A stretch of 64,000 nt of DNA from positions 124,001-188,000 of the forward strand of contig JAPMXV010000072.1 of the NCBI GenBank assembly GCA_026936335.1, written 5' to 3'. Position 1 is the stretch's first letter. Every line of letters starts with the position of its first letter. A model generated the notes under the pieces. It was not told the origin of the DNA, did not search any database, and saw only the letters and a list, made by a program, of their open reading frames with translations. Below, in pieces: positions 4,453 through 55,527 of the stretch. A program made the position numbers and the translations under genes. Source of the DNA: Mantamonas sphyraenae STR306. Lineage: Eukaryota > Protista > CRuMs.

Positions 4453-6509
4453 TCAATCCCACGCCTGGCGACATTGCACAGAGTACAGCTTTCCGTCTCC
4501 TTCGACTTCAATGCGAAAGTAGACAACCATGGCGTGGTGCGGAAGGATGAGACGTGTGCGAGGTCGCCATGTGGCGACGGCATCCTCGTAGTTGCCCCAG
4601 AGTGTGTCGCACCGCTGGCCATGGTGGCCAATGGGCTCGCCCTGGTGGTCGAGGGCAGTCAACCACACTGAGCCCAGCGTGGACGTATGGTAGTTCACCA
4701 CTATCTCCGAGTTGTTGCGACACCACATCGGCCGCGTTATGGCTTCGTTCGTGTACACCCCGGGGATCTTGATGTACTGCTTGTAGTCCACAAACCCACC
4801 CACCTTGGAATACATGTCGGCGGACATGGGAAACGTGGCCTGCACCCATCCGTTCCGTCTCACCTCGTGCCTTTGCAATCGCAACACTCCGGCTTCGCTC
4901 ACGATGGCTTCCACCATGCTCGTGCGCATGCCATGCTCGCTCACATGCCACGCCAAACCATTGTACAGCCCTCCACCTTCGTCGGCATCCTCCACACCTG
5001 TTGTCCCGTCCAAGTAGCGGTCGCGCGACACCCGATGCCACTCAATCCCGTCCGACGACACAATCAGCGTGCGGTCGGTGTTCCACGGCAAGCGGATTCC
5101 GTGGTACACCAGCCTCACGCTGCGTTCCACCACCGCCACAATCAACGTCCCTGCGTCGTCGCTGATGTGCAAGTGCACACGATGCACAACCTCCTCCACA
5201 CCGTCCAACGCCCGCGGTTCCAGCGACAACCCAGTGCCCTGTGCATGCACTCGCCATGTTTTCAGATCCTTGCTGGCCAGCAGCTTCCACCCTTGGCACT
5301 TTCCTTCCTGCCATGCGCTTCCCTCACGCGTCACTGACAGCAGCCATTGCTGCTGGCCCACATGCCACACTGGCCCGGACACATACAATGGCGCCTGTGT
5401 ACCCACTCCATCGTCCATCTCCATCAAACTGGCGCTGATGTGTTCGCGTGCATCCGATGACGACACGCTGTCCCACTCCAGTCCTGCTGCATCTCGGCTT
5501 TCCACGAGCCTCAGTCCGTCTTCTGCCGACCCCACTGCCCGTGTGTACGATTGTGTGTGTGTGTGTGTGTTGTGCTCTTGTGTGTCAGCCATCCCATCCC
5601 ATTCCATGTGCGTCCACTCTTACCGTCCCCTTTCGCCTTACCCAGGGCTTGCACCGTGTGGTGTTCTTTGTGCGGCCGTCCGTGCGCCTTTGCCCGCTCC
5701 CGAGCCAGCATGGAGGGCTGGGGAACAACAGCAAAGACTTCCACTGCGTCATGAAACACCATTCCTGCGGATTGAGTGTACGATGAGCCCGTGTCGGTGC
5801 TGATCAGTGCGCACACGCCGCAGCCGCTGCCCTCCTCGCCTGTTTCGCACCCGTAGTACGTCACAGTGTGGTTCAGTGACGTCTGCACCACGCTCAACTG
5901 TCGACGCATACTGACCCGGTCCTGTTTGCACACATGCGGTGCCTCATCCACTTTCAGCGGCACCTCCTCTGGGTCCGGTGTCAGCGCTTCCATTCGCACA
6001 TCCATCACCTTGTGACCCAGAACCCCCGGCATGGCCATTGGCTGCACCTGCTCCGCTGCCTCCCACTCTGCCTCTGACTCAGGTGCCCCTGCGTCCACCA
6101 GTGCCTTGGCTTCCCTCTCCAGCGTGTTCTTGTCCACCTGTAGCCTGTGCAACTCGAGCAGCGCTTTCCGCCGCGCTTCCCACGCCGCGCTGCCTTCCCG
6201 GTACGTTTCAATCCGCCCATACTCCTTGCGAATTTCCAATTCGCTCGGTTGCGTCTGCATCACAAACGTCGACTCTCCACGCATCATGTACCGTGGCTCC
6301 TCTAGGCTCAGCGACAGGAGCTCTCGTTTGGCCGTCGGCACCACCACGCTCCACCGCCCGTCCCGCGTCACAGGCTCCGTACCACGTGGTCCACGCACGT
6401 AGCTCCTTGCTCTCGCGTCCGCATCGTGCATGGTCAACGTCACGCCGACAATCATCACGGCACTCAGGCCTATCAGGCCCACCAGAATCCAACCCAAACG
6501 CGCCGCCAT
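4453..6509 (-). CDS. Type II membrane protein with a glycoside-hydrolase-like (beta-propeller plus beta-sandwich) C-terminal part (exons 6509-5642, 5534-4453)
   Basis: N-terminal TM helix LGWILVGLIGLSAVMIVGVTL; STDTGSSY, SRDAAGLEW, SKDLKTW and SSDGIEW propeller-like motifs; phase-1 GTAAGG..GGCAG intron. Confidence 0.65.
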
Positions 6510-6616
6510 CTCCTGTCAAAAAAACAAATCCAATTCCAGTTGCCATGGACAGCGCACATCACCTGTATTGGGTGCACAGTGGCCTCAATTGCTCAATTGG
6601 CCTCCAACTCTCCTCT

Positions 6617-9600
6617 TCATCGTCGTCGTCGCTTGCGCCTGCGCGTTTGCACCGGCTCGTCTTCATCGTCCTCGTCGTCGTCCTCGCCTCCGTTCCACTC
6701 GCTGTCATCCTCACTGTCCAGCGCTGCCAACGCACGCGATCGCTTCCCCTGCCGTGTGCCTCGCCCTCCACTCTTCCCGCCCGACTTGCGTGCACTTCCA
6801 CTTTTCCGCGTGTCCTTGCGCGTTCGTCCACGTGACCGACGTGATCGCGGCGACTGAAACGCATCGTCGTCGTCATCGTCGTCGTCGTCGTCGTCGCCCT
6901 CATCATCATCATCGTCGTCCTCCTCCTCGTCGTCGTCGTCCTCCTCCTCTTCATCCCCATCCTCATCTTCCTCCTCGTCCTCCTCCAGACTCAGTTTGCG
7001 CTTCAGACCACGACTTCTGCTGTTGCTGCTGCTGTCGTTCTCCTGCTGTTCATCGGTCGACACGTGCACCACCGACGCGTTGCTGGTTTCTTCGGGCATG
7101 CGGCTCAGTTCCTCCACGTCAATGTTCAACTCCTCCTGGTCCTTGTCCAGCGACCAGCTCGAATCCTTGATCTCCCCGTTGCTTGGGGTCGGTTGCACAA
7201 GCACCGTGTCCACAAACTGGCCCTCTTCTTCCTTCTGCGCATGTGCTTCCTCCACCTCCACTCCCGCCTCACCGCCCAGCGCATCCACAACCCGTCGTTT
7301 GCCCTCATACTTGCGCCGCAGCTTCTTACGCAGTGCCGACGCCGCCTTGCTCATTTCCTCCACCTCACCCAGGTCAAACTCGTCAAACACGCCCTCAAAC
7401 TCCTGCCTCAGCAGCTTCAGGTCGTCCTCGTCCAGCGTACCCACTTCCTCGTCGTACTGGTCCGCCTCGTCCCAGTCCAGCGTCACCTGACGGAACACAT
7501 TCAACAGACGCGATGCCACCCCGCGCAGCTTGCTCTCGTTTGCCACCTCGGTGCGCACGTACTCGTCCAACTGTGAGTAATCCACGTCGTACACCAGTTC
7601 CAACGCACGTGCCATGGCGTGTGCCGGTTTCTCTCGCGTCGTGCGTCGGTGCGTGTCGATCAGGATGCGCATGGTGCGTGCAAACTCGTGCACCTTGTCG
7701 GCCACCACATCCGTCAGCACGTCCATGCACGACTTGTCCACCTCACCCACACCCTGCATCAGCAGCGCACGCGTGACTCCTTTGCTCAACACCTTGTGCA
7801 TCACACGGTCGTCCGCATACACACCCGCAGGCAACGACTGCCCTGCTCTCCATCGTGGCAACTCGTGTTGGTGCACAATGCGCACCCCAGCACGCATTTC
7901 TGCCTCTTCTTCGGGCGTCGGCGCCACATTGTCGCCTCCTGTCCCTCCTCGTCCGCTCCCGGACGCCCCTTCCGTCTCCATCCCGTTCTCTTCAATCTCC
8001 ACCGTTTGCTCGTTGCCAAAGTCTGTCACGTTCTTGCTGCCATACGTTTGCACACGCTCGCACTCGGCCACAATCCTCGCGTGCAGCACACGGATCTGTA
8101 CGTGCGGCACCTTTTCCCTGCCTCCATGGCCGCCGTCGCCACTGACATCGCCACCCACACTCACTCCACCTTCACCTGTGCCTGTTCCACCTCCGACGAG
8201 CCCACTGCCGCTGCTGCTCGCGGGGTTGAACTGTCGATGCACACGAGGCACGTTGGTCAGCACGGGCACACTCGACGTGCGGTGCGCGTACTCCGGGAAG
8301 AAGTTGAAGCTGTTTGCGTTGTGTACGTTGGCCAGGTAGGCGCTCATGTCCTCCTGGCGACGCACCAGCGCCTCTCGCTCGTCAAGCGGCGTGTTTGCTT
8401 GCTTGTAGCGCGTGTTCAGACTGCGCATGCGTTGTTTGATCGTCAGCTCACGCCAGTTCTTCACCTGAACGTCTGCATACACCTTGCCCAGCTCTTCGTG
8501 CACCTCTGGCTCGGCCTCCTCCAGAGCTCGGATCTTGTGGTACATCACACCCACAGGGATCGTCTTGGCCCCCTCTGGCACCTCTCCTTCCTCCTCCTCC
8601 TCCTCGTTGTTCCCACTGCTGCTGCTCTTGCTACTGCCGCTTTTCTTCTTGCGTCCCCTCCCGCCTTTGCTTCGTCCTCCGCCTCCGCCGCTGCTCTTCA
8701 GGCTCGGCGTCGCCCTGCGAATGGCCTCCTGCTGCGCCAGCAACAGTTTGCGCAGACGAGTCTTTGGATCCTGGCCCTGCTCCGTGGTGGCCACCACGCG
8801 ATACTCTTCCAGGTCTTCTGTGTCATGTTCCAGCGAGTAGTACATGTCGTTCAGGCGCACGTCTGTGGCCCACGGCGACGCATTGCTTGGGTGCACCTTG
8901 TTCTCCTGCTGCACCTCTGTACCACTCACTGCCTCGGCCATTTCCTCCACATTCTTCTCCTCTGTCCCGTCCTCGTCCACATCCACCTCCTTGCTCGGCT
9001 GAAGCTTCCTGAGCATCTCTGCGTCGTGTGCTGCCGCAATCAGCTGCCCTGTCAGCAACGATCGCACTCGGTACTGCAGCAACGGACTCGTAACTGTGTG
9101 TTGCAGCAGTTCCATGTCCACGTCGTCCATGGAGATGCCGCTGCGAAAAGTGCATCACAAGGTCAGTTCCTTTCGCCCCTCCTTGCGTCCAACACACACC
9201 TGCACATGGTCCAAACGGCCTGGATGATCCATGCACACCTCATTTCCTATCCGGCCAATGGCGTGTGTCTGTCCACAACACACGCAATACAGGTGCATAC
9301 GCGGAGTGACACGCAATGTGACCCACTCCACGGCCCTCCTGTGCCAGTGCCAGTGCCATCAGGGACACCCTGCCAACAGGTGGACACGCGACACACTCAA
9401 CATGCACGGACAAACACGGTGCAGCTGCTTTGCTGCTGCTTGGGGTCACACGGGACTTGCTGACTCCAAAAAATGCGCGGGAAGAAAACACATCACCCAC
9501 CTGACGCTGGCTTCCTTCTTGGCCGCCGCCTGGCCCTTGGCGTCCTTCTTGCGCGTGGTCGTAAAGGCGTTGATGTCGAATGGGTGCATCTGCACCTCGT

Positions 9601-49447: not shown

Positions 49448-50244
49448 ATGGTTCGTTTGTAGTTGCCACCACATGCACACCTTGCCCATGTGCACCACCC
49501 ATGTCCACCTTTCACATCCATGGCCCATGCATACACGTACGCACACATGTGCACGTGCAAGGCAGCCCCCCGTTGCTGGAGCCCTCGCTCCAAATTCGCC
49601 TTGCTCCCGCCAAGGCCCTTTCGGCCGCCCCGCCAGGCTTCCACACACGCCACAGATTCACAGCACCTGCAGCCATGCATGCAGCCTGGCTCTATGTACA
49701 TATACCCTGGCTTGCGTGTGGCCCTGTGTCTCGTGCTGCGTGTGCCGGGCTGCCTTTGCGTCAGGTGCATGCAACTTTTTCGCCCGCCAGCCACACTGCC
49801 AATGCCGCGTTTGCCGGCCGCGTCAGCCGTGCACACGCCCTGGCGTACCATGCGCACGCATGTGTGTGTGTGCCTCCCGTCTGCATCATCCTGCACCTGT
49901 CTCTATTCACCTGTGTTGTCCATCCCGGAGCTGCGGTGCACTTTAAGCCTCGCCTGCATGCCAGCCAATTTCGCTCACACCCTCCGTTTCTGCCTTCTCC
50001 CACCCTCGTCGACTGTGTCCCCGTGTGCCTCCCACAGCCCAAACAGATTACCGACATCAAGCAGTTCCTGACCATCTGCCGCCGCAAGGACACCCGCTCG
50101 GTCAAGATCAAGAAGACTGTGCGCGTCACCAAGTTCAAGGTGCGCACTTCTAAATATCTGTACACCTTCTGCGTCAAGGATGCCGACAAGGCCGAGAAGC
50201 TCAAGCAGTCTCTGCCGCCCAACGCCAAGGCCATCGATGTCTAA
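49448..50244 (+). CDS. RPL38: 60S ribosomal protein L38 (ATG-only first coding exon 49448-49450; exon 50038-50244)
   Basis: [47 protein letters not shown]; ATG|GTTCGT..CACAG|CCC. Confidence 0.96.
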
Positions 50245-50325: not shown

Positions 50326-51117
50326 CTACTCGGTTGAACTCGCCTGTTTGGATGCCAGCTGCATCTTAAAGTCCTGGATCTGGCTGCGCATGTTGTAGTT
50401 GGGGATGATGGTCTTGTTGTCCAGGGTCTGGTTGGTCATGGGCGATGTGTCGTGGGTTTTGAGCCAGTCCTCAATGGCCGTCCGTTCGTACGTGTACCCA
50501 TCGCACAGGAACACAGGGTCGCTGTAAACTGTAAAGGCAATGGGACACACAAACGCATCGGGTGCCTCTTGGCTCAGCTGCTCCTCCAGGTCCTCGTTTG
50601 CGTTGGCCAGCGACTCGATCTTGATGCGCGTCAACCCGCTCACTGTTGTCGTCTCTGTCTCTGTCTCTGTCTCTGCTGTCGTCTCCACCTCCACCCCCGT
50701 GGTAGACGTGGCATTCACCACACGCAGCTGCACCCCTTTGCCGTTGTGCATGTCCTGGAAGGAGACGTCGTCCAGGAAGAGGTAGTCCTTGAAGGAGACG
50801 TCAAAGAACTGCAGTTCCGCATCCAGAGGCACCCCCAGCTGGCAGTTCAGTTCCGACTTGAGTTGGCCAACCCCAGCCACACTCACCGTCAGCTCGTATG
50901 CCTTTTCCTGGAACTCCACCGTCAGCGTGAGATCCTTGACCCCCTGGTCCTGCCTGGTCCATTCCGCAGGCTGCTCCACCTTTTTCTGCTGTGGATCGTA
51001 GCTTCCGCCGTACGAATAGCCGCCGTAGCTGCCATAGCCACCGTAGCTGCTGTATGAGTTCTGATTGGTCGTCTGCTGCGGCTGGTAGTACGACCCATAC
51101 TGGCCGTAGCTTGAATA

Positions 51118-51153
<36 letters not shown>

Positions 51154-52698
51154 CCTGTACGACGACACATAGCTGTTGTATCGGTTGTACTGCTGCCGCT
51201 TCAACCCTGCTTTGCCGTACTGACGCATATCCTTGGGCGGCTTCTCATGGTACTCCACCTCGATCACCTTGCCCGCAAGCGCCACGTGCTCATTCAGAGC
51301 CACCACAAAGCGACCCATGCGTGAGCAGTCTGTGAAACGGTCCATGAATGCCGGCGTCTGTACGGTGAGGGTCACCTCGCCGGCCTGGCCTGTGACGATC
51401 TGCGTGGGGGAATCCTCCACGTTGTTGCCCAGCCTGTCTGTGGAAAAGTGCAACTTGTGAAAGTGCACACGTGCACTGATGCCGTGGGAGAGCATGGTGC
51501 CCTCGACACCAAACTGGACCCCCTTGGGTGCATTGATGACCATGATCTGTGCACGCAGTGTGTTGACCGCAGCATCCTCTGTGCGATGCACACTTGCAGT
51601 CATCACCATACCCCGTGCCACCTCCCTCAGCGCTGTGTTGCCCAAACACATGCCCACATTCATGCCTGCCACCGCCCGGCTCACCGACTCGTTCCACACC
51701 TCCATCGACTTGACCACCTTGCGCAACCCCAGCGGCGCAAGCATCACATTGCTTCCCACATCCAACGAGCCCTGCAGCACAACCCCAGTGACCACGGTGC
51801 CCACCCCACCGATCTTCATCTTGTCATGGATCACCATGCGGAACGGTGCGTCCACCTCACGTTCCATGGGTTCCAACGCCGCAAACAGTTCGCTCAGCGT
51901 GGCGCCTTCATACCATGACACCGCACCTGTGTTCTCCGTCAGGTTGTCATACGTGAATGCCATGCGAAACTCCTTTTCGTCCTTGCTCGGGCGTCGGCAC
52001 TGCAGCACCGTCCACGTCTGCCGATCCTTCTTCACACCCACTTTGGTGGCGTACTTGGTCAGCTCCGCCTTTACCTCTCCGTACAACTTGGCCTCGGCCT
52101 CGTCCTCATTGCCGCTGACCACGTACGCAAACACAAAGTCACGCACCCCGAGCGCAAGCGCCATCGAGAGTTGTGCTCGAAGACCCTGCCGGCGGTCGTG
52201 TCCCACATCCGCCTGGATGAACGCCTTGGAACACACAACCAATGCCACATCCGTCTATTCCAGGACGGGTGGTCATGGAAGCAATGCATGGGCAGTGTCG
52301 TGCAAGGGAACAGCCAAGGGCGTGTGTGTGTGTGTGAGTGGGAAGCACCCGGGTGTGTGTTAAGCCAGCAATTCCGCGAAATTGCCTTTGCTGCCAAAAC
52401 CAGGCCGGAATGGGCAATGCCAACTCACAATACCCATCATACGTGCGCGGTTGCGTCGAGAGTTGCCCGGCACGTGGAACCATGTGCCTTTCTTCCCGCC
52501 AAAATCCAGCGGAAACGAGAAGAGGTCGCCTTTGGGATTGGTAAGGTCTCGATCAGCGTAGAGACGTCGGAACTGGGAATTGTCGTTTACCAGCGCCCCC
52601 AGAACCATTGTGCTCAAGTCATGCTCCCCCAACACACACGCGAGTATGTTATTGTCGTCTGCTTGGACCTCTGTGTTTTTGCCCGATCGAGTCGACAT
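50326..52698 (-). CDS. eEF1A-derived pseudo-GTPase fused to a prion-like tract, possible ubiquitin-like domain and U-box (exons 52698-52429, 52254-50326; 732 aa)
   Basis: Domain II REVDAPFRMVIHDKMKIGGVGTVVTG..VKSMEV..AGMNVG; domain III AQIMVINAP..MGRFVV; U-box FVCPIAFTVYSDPVFLCDGYTYERTAIEDWL..TSPMT..PNYNMRSQI. Confidence 0.85.
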
Positions 52699-54250: not shown

Positions 54251-55527
54251 TCAATCCGGTGATTGGTTGTCGCCAAAGGCAAAGTCGGATGGGTATTTGA
54301 GGACGGGAAACTCGTCCTCGAGCATGAGGGCACCCTTGCGGCCAAAGGCACAGCAGGAACGTGAGCGTTTGCTGTTGATGCCATCGTTGTGGTGTTGGAA
54401 CGGGTCGACGTGCAGCACGTAGCGTGTGTTTGCCCAGGCCTGGTAGAAGCGAAAGAGGGCGGCGTCGGAGATGTCACCCTCCAACACAGGCATGGCCACA
54501 ATGGTTTGATAGGTGGACACCACCTTGTGGACTTTGATGCGGTCCTTGCTGAACGTAAACGACACAAGCTCCTCGTCTGTTTCCGTCACCCTGTCCGCTT
54601 CCACAATCAACAGCGGCGCCAGCTTTTGGTTGTACTCACGGAAGGGCAGGATCTTTTGTACCACGTACCAATCGATGGTCGGGAACAATCCCACCCCACC
54701 GCCTTTGTACTTCATCAGGCACGGTCCCAACCCGTCCACCCAGCACGGTGCTCCCAGACGGCCCATGTACACAAACGAAAAGTCTTCCGGTCCCGTGTCC
54801 TCTGGTATCCTGTGGTGTGGTGTGGTGTGTTGTGTGGGTGTCAGACAGAGCCAGAGGCGGTGCCGGTGAGTGCCAGGGGCACGAAACGAGAGGGGGGATG
54901 CGATGGGCCGTTTGCTCAGCTCACCCGCAAAACCACCCCCCGCTCTGTGGACGGCGCCACAACGTACGATGTGACTTGGCGAAACACCTGCGTGTCGTCG
55001 TGGACTATTTGAAACTTGAGGCCGTCGGGGATGTTGCGGAACATGCTGACGCGCTGGTGCATGTCCTCCACGGCCACAACGGTCCTGGCCAGCAACTTGA
55101 GGCTGGTCTTGTGCGAGCGCAGCATGCCCTTCATGTTCCGCTTGCCACCCGTTGTCGTCTTGCCTTCCTCGCCCCGTGTCTGTGCATGCCCTACCCCGCT
55201 GCTGCTGTTGCTACTGTTGCTTGCCTCCTCTGCAAGCAGCTCCTCCGACTCTTCGTCCCTCAGCGGCGCGATCTGCGTCAGCTCCACGCGGCTCTTTTTC
55301 TTCTTTTTGCGCTTCTTCTTCTCCTCCTTCATCATCCGCCGATGCTCCTCCATCGGAGACCCGGGCACCACGATGGACGACGTCGACATGGGTCCTTCCT
55401 CTGTTGTCACACGTCGTTTGCCCAAACCCTCCTTTGGACTTGTGTTGCCTCCATCAGTGTGCCTGTGTAGGATGCCTGGGACACTTCCTTCGTTTCGTGC
55501 GCCCTCATTCTTGGTTTCCATTTGCAT
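54251..55527 (-). CDS. Uncharacterised protein (2 exons, intron about 54924-54810; junction phase ambiguous)
   Basis: ORFs 54916-55557 and 54251-54772 are separated by GTGAGC..CACAG; poly-Lys NLS-like tract; no family recognised. Confidence 0.55.

Follow-up and report, generated by a model that had tools for sequence, protein, structure and literature searches.

In the Mantamonas sphyraenae STR306 genome, a 64,000-nucleotide window (the whole stretch of DNA that was analysed) contains a minus-strand gene, at window positions 50326-52698, that is predicted to encode a single chain of about 730 residues in which an eEF1A-like body with an eroded G domain is followed by a C-terminal U-box. Judged from these modules, we give an even chance to the view that the product works as a single-chain U-box E3 ubiquitin ligase in which a lineage-specific, GTPase-dead paralogue of eEF1A serves as the recognition or targeting module. 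More tentatively, and by analogy, its targets may belong to the translation machinery, either ribosomes whose A site or GTPase centre is empty or blocked, or the partners of eEF1A. Occurrence of this protein is so far limited to one little-studied lineage, Mantamonas. The genome that was searched comprises 25,061,354 bases in 78 contigs, and the window lies on contig C72 (GC near 59%). Illumina reads were used to polish the published FALCON assembly of M. sphyraenae (25.06 Mb in 78 contigs, 59.19% GC; PMC10492846), and frame errors are therefore unlikely.

Gene model and domain organisation

The interval is not a single open reading frame (ORF). It contains three in-frame stop codons, all inside 52428-52255, and we read it as two exons separated by one predicted intron. 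Exon 1 (52698-52429) comprises 90 codons from an ATG at 52698 and would encode what remains of the G domain's first third, the predicted phase 0 intron (52428-52255; 174 nt, GTGAGT...AATAG) holds all three stops, and exon 2 (52254-50326) provides 642 codons and a TAG in an uninterrupted frame that runs from the remaining G domain to the U-box. The intron starts directly after the codons for RMMGI and ends directly before those for TDVALVV, and in an alignment with the genome's own eEF1A this junction corresponds to that between NMITG and TSQADLAVLIV. GC content at codon positions 1, 2 and 3 of the intron is 0.60, 0.52 and 0.57, so that the signature of coding sequence at third positions (GC3) is absent; in exon 2, each 60-codon window, the linker included, has a GC3 of 0.72-0.82 and a second-position GC (GC2) of 0.33-0.53. 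The tandem paralogue described below has an intron of 82 nt (GTGAGT...CACAG) at the homologous codon, and its removal is needed to keep the frame. These sequence features are consistent with a two-exon gene whose intron is used as predicted. Exons 1 and 2 were searched, aligned and folded individually, and every result given here refers to single exons; the query of the Pfam scan was the 640-aa ORF at 52248-50326 of exon 2, and the elongation factor (EF) part and the C-terminal part of the exon 2 product were folded separately with AlphaFold2 (AF2).

A sequence-only reading of this DNA had proposed clearly recognisable domains II and III of eEF1A, an eroded G domain, a Y/S/G/Q/N tract and an intact U-box, all of which are borne out by profile, alignment and structure prediction. 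The domain II beta-barrel (51598-51801, minus strand) matches PF03144 (GTP_EFTU_D2) at 1.3e-8 and domain III (51265-51558, minus strand) matches PF22594 (GTP-eEF1A_C) at 5e-11; together with the U-box match, both exceed the curated Pfam cut-offs. When exon 2 was compared with the PDB using phmmer, eEF1A came first (1.6e-28, chain residues 120-431), followed by archaeal aEF1A, eRF3 (1e-19), Hbs1l (1e-15) and EF-Tu, with bit scores of 103 for eEF1A, 74 for eRF3, 60 for Hbs1l and at most 52 for EF-Tu. The top matches were the yeast eEF1A-eEF1B-alpha structures, in which domains II and III of eEF1A are seen to carry eEF1B-alpha and the pocket for the aminoacyl end.

For the EF part of exon 2, AF2 gave a model with a mean predicted local distance difference test score (pLDDT) of 86.8, with values above 90 in domains II and III, and a predicted TM-score (pTM) of 0.81. 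It superposes on ribosome-bound Hbs1l with a Z score of 30.9 (317 residues at 2.5 A) and on the GTPase-like domain of Ski7 with a Z score of 22.2, and its domains II and III also superpose on eRF3 and aEF1A (VIA-align Z 27-31, including Hbs1l). The domain II/III alignment has 19 columns that are invariant or nearly so, and the protein retains every one of them. Identity to the genome's own eEF1A is 34% in domain II and 26% in domain III, and the pocket motif of domain II has changed from QDVYKIGG to HDKMKIGG, with replacement of the aromatic residue.

The G domain is degenerate throughout its nucleotide-binding motifs. In alignments, the P-loop reads VLGEHDL-ST (VLGEHDLST ungapped) against GHVDSGKST in eEF1A, with the Gly-Lys pair missing, and the switch-I region has lost about 20 residues. 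The DAPGH motif has become HVPGN, with loss of the Asp, NKMD is replaced by SGNE (within VSGNED), and the G5 region has a 13-aa insertion that is common to the tandem paralogue. The G1-G5 set (GxxxxGK[ST], switch-I Thr, DxxG, NKxD, SAx) is thus not preserved, and because the motifs that define these enzymes were examined and found wanting, we class the protein by sequence as an eEF1A-derived pseudo-GTPase, outside the working eEF1A GTPases. The part of the G domain in exon 2 (51802-52254, minus strand), which includes the NKxD position and the 13-aa insertion, is modelled with a pLDDT of 72-91 except in two loops. The Pfam GTP_EFTU family had no match on exon 1 or exon 2. Exon 1 alone had no Pfam or BLASTP match, and profile comparison (hhalign) gave only a local match, in the correct register, with an E-value of 0.006 and a probability of 6%. 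We assign this exon to the G domain because of its position, the in-phase junction, the motif remnants and the exon 1 of the tandem paralogue, which still has GSPGVGKT.

Domain III is followed by a tract of 78 residues (50965-51198, minus strand) consisting of 24% S, 21% Y, 13% Q, 12% N and 12% G, 82% for these five residues together, with eight [GS]Y[GSQ] motifs. In composition it is a prion-like, FUS-type low-complexity tract. Next comes a segment of 85 aa (50689-50943, minus strand) for which the sequence-only reading had suggested a beta-grasp-like fold over about 75 aa. The segment itself is upheld, as its conservation in Mantamonas plastica marks it as a real domain in sequence terms. 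The fold is a candidate only: AF2 gives a b-b-a-b-a-b pattern at a pLDDT of about 50, the Atlas features that it matched (Rad60-SLD, PB1, TDP-43_N, CIDE-N and GRHL1_C) scored 0.81-0.84, which is lead level (below 0.9), and there was no Pfam match at E-values up to 10 and nothing relevant in a PDB profile search. The model would fit a ubiquitin-like domain, which we regard as possible. A Thr/Glu-rich linker and a helix (50566-50688, minus strand; AF2 helix at model residues 109-122) lead into the U-box.

The U-box (50359-50565, minus strand) matches PF04564 at 4.7e-19 (68.7 bits; the cut-off is 21.4) and is modelled with a pLDDT of 95-98. In Foldseek comparisons the model superposes on the U-box of GmPUB13 with a root-mean-square deviation (rmsd) of 0.6 A at 48% identity, and on the U-boxes of plant PUB13 and CIE1, solved with or without a ubiquitin-conjugating enzyme (E2), with an rmsd of 0.6-0.8 A. 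The family positions C-P-I, D-P-V, D-G, Y-E, W-L and S-P-x-T are all retained. By profile and predicted fold this is a bona fide U-box protein, and ligase activity is predicted from these features. When the U-box was modelled in complex with the UBE2D-like E2 of this genome (C67:71333-71773, L021:1489-1929), the prediction scored 0.14 against a mark of 0.34, which counts neither way.

Distribution of the architecture and eEF1A-like paralogues

To place the architecture, an exhaustive HMMER search was made of 1.84 billion representative proteins. It returned 18,075 matches, and among the best 150, which we inspected, none combined eEF1A-type domains with a U-box; a protein with both modules would rank at the top because the two module scores add. 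None of the EF-type matches inspected had a U-box, and none of the 10 long U-box matches that were scanned had EF-Tu-type domains. The top match, P0024, which is also the only one above 150 bits, was rejected as a duplicated canonical eEF1A chimera rather than a relative, and the best EF-type matches are ordinary eEF1A proteins at about 30% identity. Word-index protein searches, run with the whole exon 2 ORF and with a two-sequence profile of the tandem pair, were dominated by words common in domain II, and their matches were limited to weak ones to EF-Tu and SelB. In metagenomes, scanning for the pattern of the conserved segment and U-box yielded no relative, and a scan with the tandem pair gave generic domain II matches only. 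Full-text literature searches returned no description of an eEF1A-like plus U-box architecture. These results agree with the sequence-only reading, which had not recognised the architecture as described, and by sequence the protein is a predicted U-box E3 with a putative targeting domain of a previously undescribed class.

The only specific relative among the best 150 matches is P0025, an ORF of 188 aa from the M. plastica transcriptome that contains the conserved segment and the U-box. It is 44% identical to the M. sphyraenae protein over 174 aa (segment plus U-box) and 46% over the segment, and conservation at this level argues for purifying selection. P0025 has no EF part; it bears the label p3 among the ORFs of a Trinity isoform, and the first predicted strand of the segment is absent from it. 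The protein searches and metagenome scans revealed no orthologue of the complete protein outside Mantamonas. Two candidates, P0074 and P0141, grouped with it in one tree and were set aside as orthologues: P0074 shares 49% identity with the canonical eEF1A of the genome but only 31% with the U-box protein, and the grouping is probably due to long-branch attraction. Both are short eEF1A-like proteins encoded on gene-dense contigs with unannotated neighbours. Two metagenome/SRA contigs (L027:4323-5543 and L028:472-1707) encode short eEF1A-like proteins, of 406-411 aa, in which switch I is deleted and NKxD altered and which are closer to canonical eEF1A than to the U-box protein. These contigs are GC-rich and dense with ORFs that lack a Pfam match, and may be viral or come from a compact protist.

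Within the M. sphyraenae genome, at least nine degenerate eEF1A-like genes were found (the U-box gene, its tandem neighbour, four F-box genes and three genes on C31). They lie mostly in tandem arrays and have 16-40% mutual identity. The genome also has canonical eEF1A at three loci, an HBS1-like gene (C49) and an eRF3-like gene (C54). The tandem sister of the U-box gene (54097-52714, minus strand; exon 1 54097-53846, intron 53845-53764, exon 2 53763-52714) is a degenerate eEF1A-like gene without a ligase module. It keeps GSPGVGKT, has lost DxxG and NKxD, and shows a deletion in domain III and a D2 match of 0.017-0.018, below the Pfam cut-off. Its TGA (52716-52714) is 15 nt upstream of the ATG of the U-box gene (52698) and in the same frame. 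On sequence, so small a gap might reflect transcription units that overlap, co-transcription, or read-through of the stop codon.

Four other genes join an eEF1A-like body to an F-box-like domain: a tandem trio at C4:172783-175800 (L013:3784-6798), C4:176178-179210 (L018:1179-4208) and C4:179119-182112 (L018:4120-7110), and a single gene at C6:112488-115952 (L029:1989-5450). The trio is followed by a leucine-rich repeat (LRR) gene (C4:182181-183248). The F-box proteins are about 1000-1150 aa long. Their N-terminal bodies have GTP_EFTU and/or GTP-eEF1A_C matches, with aEF1A or eEF1A as the best PDB matches. They resemble the U-box protein in combining a divergent a/eEF1A-like N-terminal body with an E3 module and in being tandem and lineage-specific. 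They differ from it in that the module is an F-box, an adaptor of Skp1-Cullin-F-box (SCF) ligases, located near residues 780-985 after about 400 intervening residues, and in that their G motifs are better retained (GQMGVGKT, DTPGK/DAPGH, N/T-R/H-L-D); nor are they closer to the U-box protein than canonical eEF1A is. Among themselves they are 35-40% identical in the EF-like part versus 47-53% in the F-box and C-terminal part, and a word-index protein search with the C-terminal 600 aa of one of them found no relative. The C31 genes form a second tandem trio (C31:296415-301482; L014:3416-5239, 5139-6854 and 6911-8479) with domain II/III matches only and all G motifs lost, and with N-terminal extensions of 150-250 aa. 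On C18 there is a duplicated, inverted pair of eEF1A-like genes of 485 aa (C18:28670-30124 and C18:37686-39140; L006:1162-2616 and L005:1396-2850) in which the G motifs are intact except for DAPGC in place of DAPGH. The C18 product has a Lys/Glu-rich C-terminal tail, shares about 39-57% identity with canonical eEF1A in its individual domains and, from its sequence, appears to be a functional second paralogue.

In phylogenetic trees the U-box protein and its tandem neighbour are sisters, with 98-100 support in the Shimodaira-Hasegawa-like approximate likelihood ratio test (SH-aLRT). The U-box protein falls in the eEF1A-like radiation, outside the starred eRF3/HBS1 clade, and its position within that radiation is unsettled on a long branch. 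Taken together, the trees and the phmmer bit scores place it closer to eEF1A than to eRF3, HBS1, EF-Tu or SelB. A single clade of degenerate paralogues is neither shown nor rejected (approximately unbiased (AU) test, p 0.515) in a tree of eight of them, all on long branches, from which the C6 F-box gene was left out. As for the ligase module, the U-box in the genome most similar to that of this protein is found at the end of a MORN-repeat protein on C62 (L008:1-1719, plus strand), with 54% identity that includes HD(T/S)SPMTNQ. The placement of U-boxes C-terminal to other binding modules, such as MORN repeats on C62, shows that the U-box is a mobile C-terminal module in this genome. Coupling of eEF1A-like modules to E3 modules recurs in the genome, with U-box and F-box alike.

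Proposed function and competing explanations

In the mechanism that we propose, the U-box would recruit a ubiquitin-charged E2 of the UBE2D type, and the frozen eEF1A-like body would dock at sites that serve eEF1A-family proteins, thereby bringing the E2 to the target. The S/Y/G-rich tract could act as a flexible tether, drive condensation or allow entry to RNA-protein condensates, and the conserved 85-aa segment, if ubiquitin-like, might be an adaptor, a proteasome handle or a regulatory handle. A ligase aimed at the contact sites of the eEF1A family is favoured because of two parallels, the receptor logic of F-box proteins and the adaptor role of Hbs1 and Ski7. In SCF ligases, the part of an F-box protein outside the F-box is normally the substrate receptor, and the suggestion of the sequence-only reading that the eEF1A surface is used for targeting gains weight from the four eEF1A-like plus F-box genes of the same genome. 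Since eEF1A-like bodies are joined to two unrelated E3 modules, a chance fusion is unlikely and a general use of the fold in targeting is indicated. It is possible, though we hold this broader idea with some reserve, that the eEF1A fold has become a new class of E3 substrate receptor in Mantamonas, with pseudo-GTPase paralogues in U-box and SCF ligases that would read the A site or GTPase centre or capture foreign factors that hijack eEF1A; the neighbour without a ligase module may be a partner or regulator.

Hbs1 and Ski7 are eEF1A-family proteins that have turned into surveillance adaptors, and Ski7 is no longer a normal GTPase. The M. sphyraenae protein is like them in having an eEF1A-fold, three-domain body in what would be a non-elongation role, as reflected in the Z scores of 30.9 and 22.2. 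It is unlike them in grouping by sequence and in trees with eEF1A-like proteins rather than within the eRF3/HBS1 clade, in lacking an N-terminal exosome- or Ski-binding region, in having an E3 domain of its own and in the far greater erosion of its G motifs. We know of no Hbs1 or Ski7 protein that carries an E3 domain. With CHIP/STUB1, plant PUBs and kinase-U-box proteins it shares a recognition domain followed by a helix and a C-terminal U-box of canonical fold with E2-facing residues, whereas the recognition part of those proteins is a TPR, ARM, WD40 or kinase domain instead of an eEF1A-like pseudo-GTPase.

Ligases such as ZNF598, Listerin and RNF14/RNF25 reach the ribosome via RING-type domains of their own or via adaptors, and a ligase built on a copy of an elongation factor would, if true, represent a different and very direct route to translation surveillance. 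The RNF14/RNF25-GCN1 pathway ubiquitinates eEF1A that is trapped on stalled ribosomes (bioRxiv 10.1101/2022.03.21.485216). It is comparable in connecting eEF1A and the GTPase centre of the ribosome with ubiquitin ligases, but its enzymes are RING/RBR ligases without sequence relation to the present protein, and eEF1A is their substrate and not, as here, a fold within the ligase. Rice SPL33/LMM5.1 is an eEF1A-like protein with an added N-terminal zinc-finger domain that negatively regulates cell death and defence, a role outside elongation (PMC5441852). Its EF-Tu domains are reported there to be functional, and a ligase domain is lacking. The M. sphyraenae protein would be a lineage-specific invention in CRuMs, a group of deep-branching and hardly studied eukaryotes, and a naturally occurring pseudo-GTPase with a frozen conformation that could be put to use as an A-site probe. 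It is small enough for expression and direct in vitro tests.

Several points weigh against a translation-directed ligase of this kind. The splice and the continuity of the transcript are read from the genome sequence alone, the homology of exon 1 to the G domain is statistically weak, and the fusion has been seen in the M. sphyraenae genome only, P0025 being possibly a fragment. With switch I and nucleotide binding gone, the surfaces that the GTP form of eEF1A presents to aminoacyl-tRNA and the ribosome could be lost as well, and what the eEF1A-like body binds we infer by analogy. The true substrate receptor of the F-box paralogues could instead be the stretch of about 400 uncharacterised residues that separates their EF-like part from the F-box.

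Among the other explanations, the one that survives best, though we think it unlikely, is a bait: the dead eEF1A copy would lure bacterial effectors, viral replication proteins or RNAs that seize eEF1A, and the ligase would ubiquitinate them. The sequence-only reading had raised this as its second option. A fast-evolving, lineage-specific expansion of at least nine catalytically dead genes, mostly in tandem, with 16-40% identity and fused to two kinds of E3 module, would suit such a role, as would the lower conservation of the EF-like part in the F-box paralogues (35-40%, against 47-53% in the F-box and C-terminal part) and the lack of orthologues outside Mantamonas in the searches made. However, a good decoy should keep the surface that is targeted, and it is the G domain, the site of the best-known effector modification, that is eroded here, with about 20 residues lost; Legionella Lgt glucosylates Ser53 of eEF1A, which is in this domain. 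In addition, the immediate neighbour eL38 is a housekeeping gene, the divergence is too deep for a ratio of nonsynonymous to synonymous substitution rates (dN/dS), and we know of no pathogen of Mantamonas.

We see little likelihood that there is not one working gene here but a decaying duplicate, separate EF-like and U-box products, or an unused exon 1. This explanation draws on a gene model taken from sequence, an exon 1 devoid of significant similarity, a sister gene that is clearly decaying in its domain III and D2 matches, the fact that the U-box part has its M. plastica relative in a separate 188-aa ORF, and the distance of only 15 nt to the upstream gene. It is hard to reconcile with an open frame of 642 codons of uniform coding signature, a U-box and domains II and III that score well and fold confidently, and an intron with canonical ends that is in phase, restores the homologous junction and lies at the same codon as in the sister gene, in an assembly polished with Illumina reads (PMC10492846). 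An equally improbable role is that of a regulator of the factor pool, in which the mimic would pair with eEF1A or compete for eEF1B or chaperone-like clients and, by ubiquitinating them, tune eEF1A or eEF1B levels or pass misfolded nascent proteins to the proteasome: domains II and III are better preserved than the rest (34% and 26% identical to eEF1A of this genome, with high pLDDT) and a ubiquitin-like segment, itself a candidate fold only, would suit proteasome delivery beside a U-box, but the pocket aromatic is replaced (HDKMKIGG for QDVYKIGG) and nothing points to eEF1B over any other ligand.

Neighbouring genes

Directly upstream of the eEF1A-like pair is an ORF of 173 aa (54251-54772, minus strand) that has no Pfam match at E-values up to 0.001. 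On the other side, the gene for the ribosomal protein eL38 (50047-50244, plus strand; Pfam 8.2e-30) is convergent with the U-box gene. The stop codons of the two genes are 81 nt apart, so their 3' untranslated regions must be very short or overlapping.

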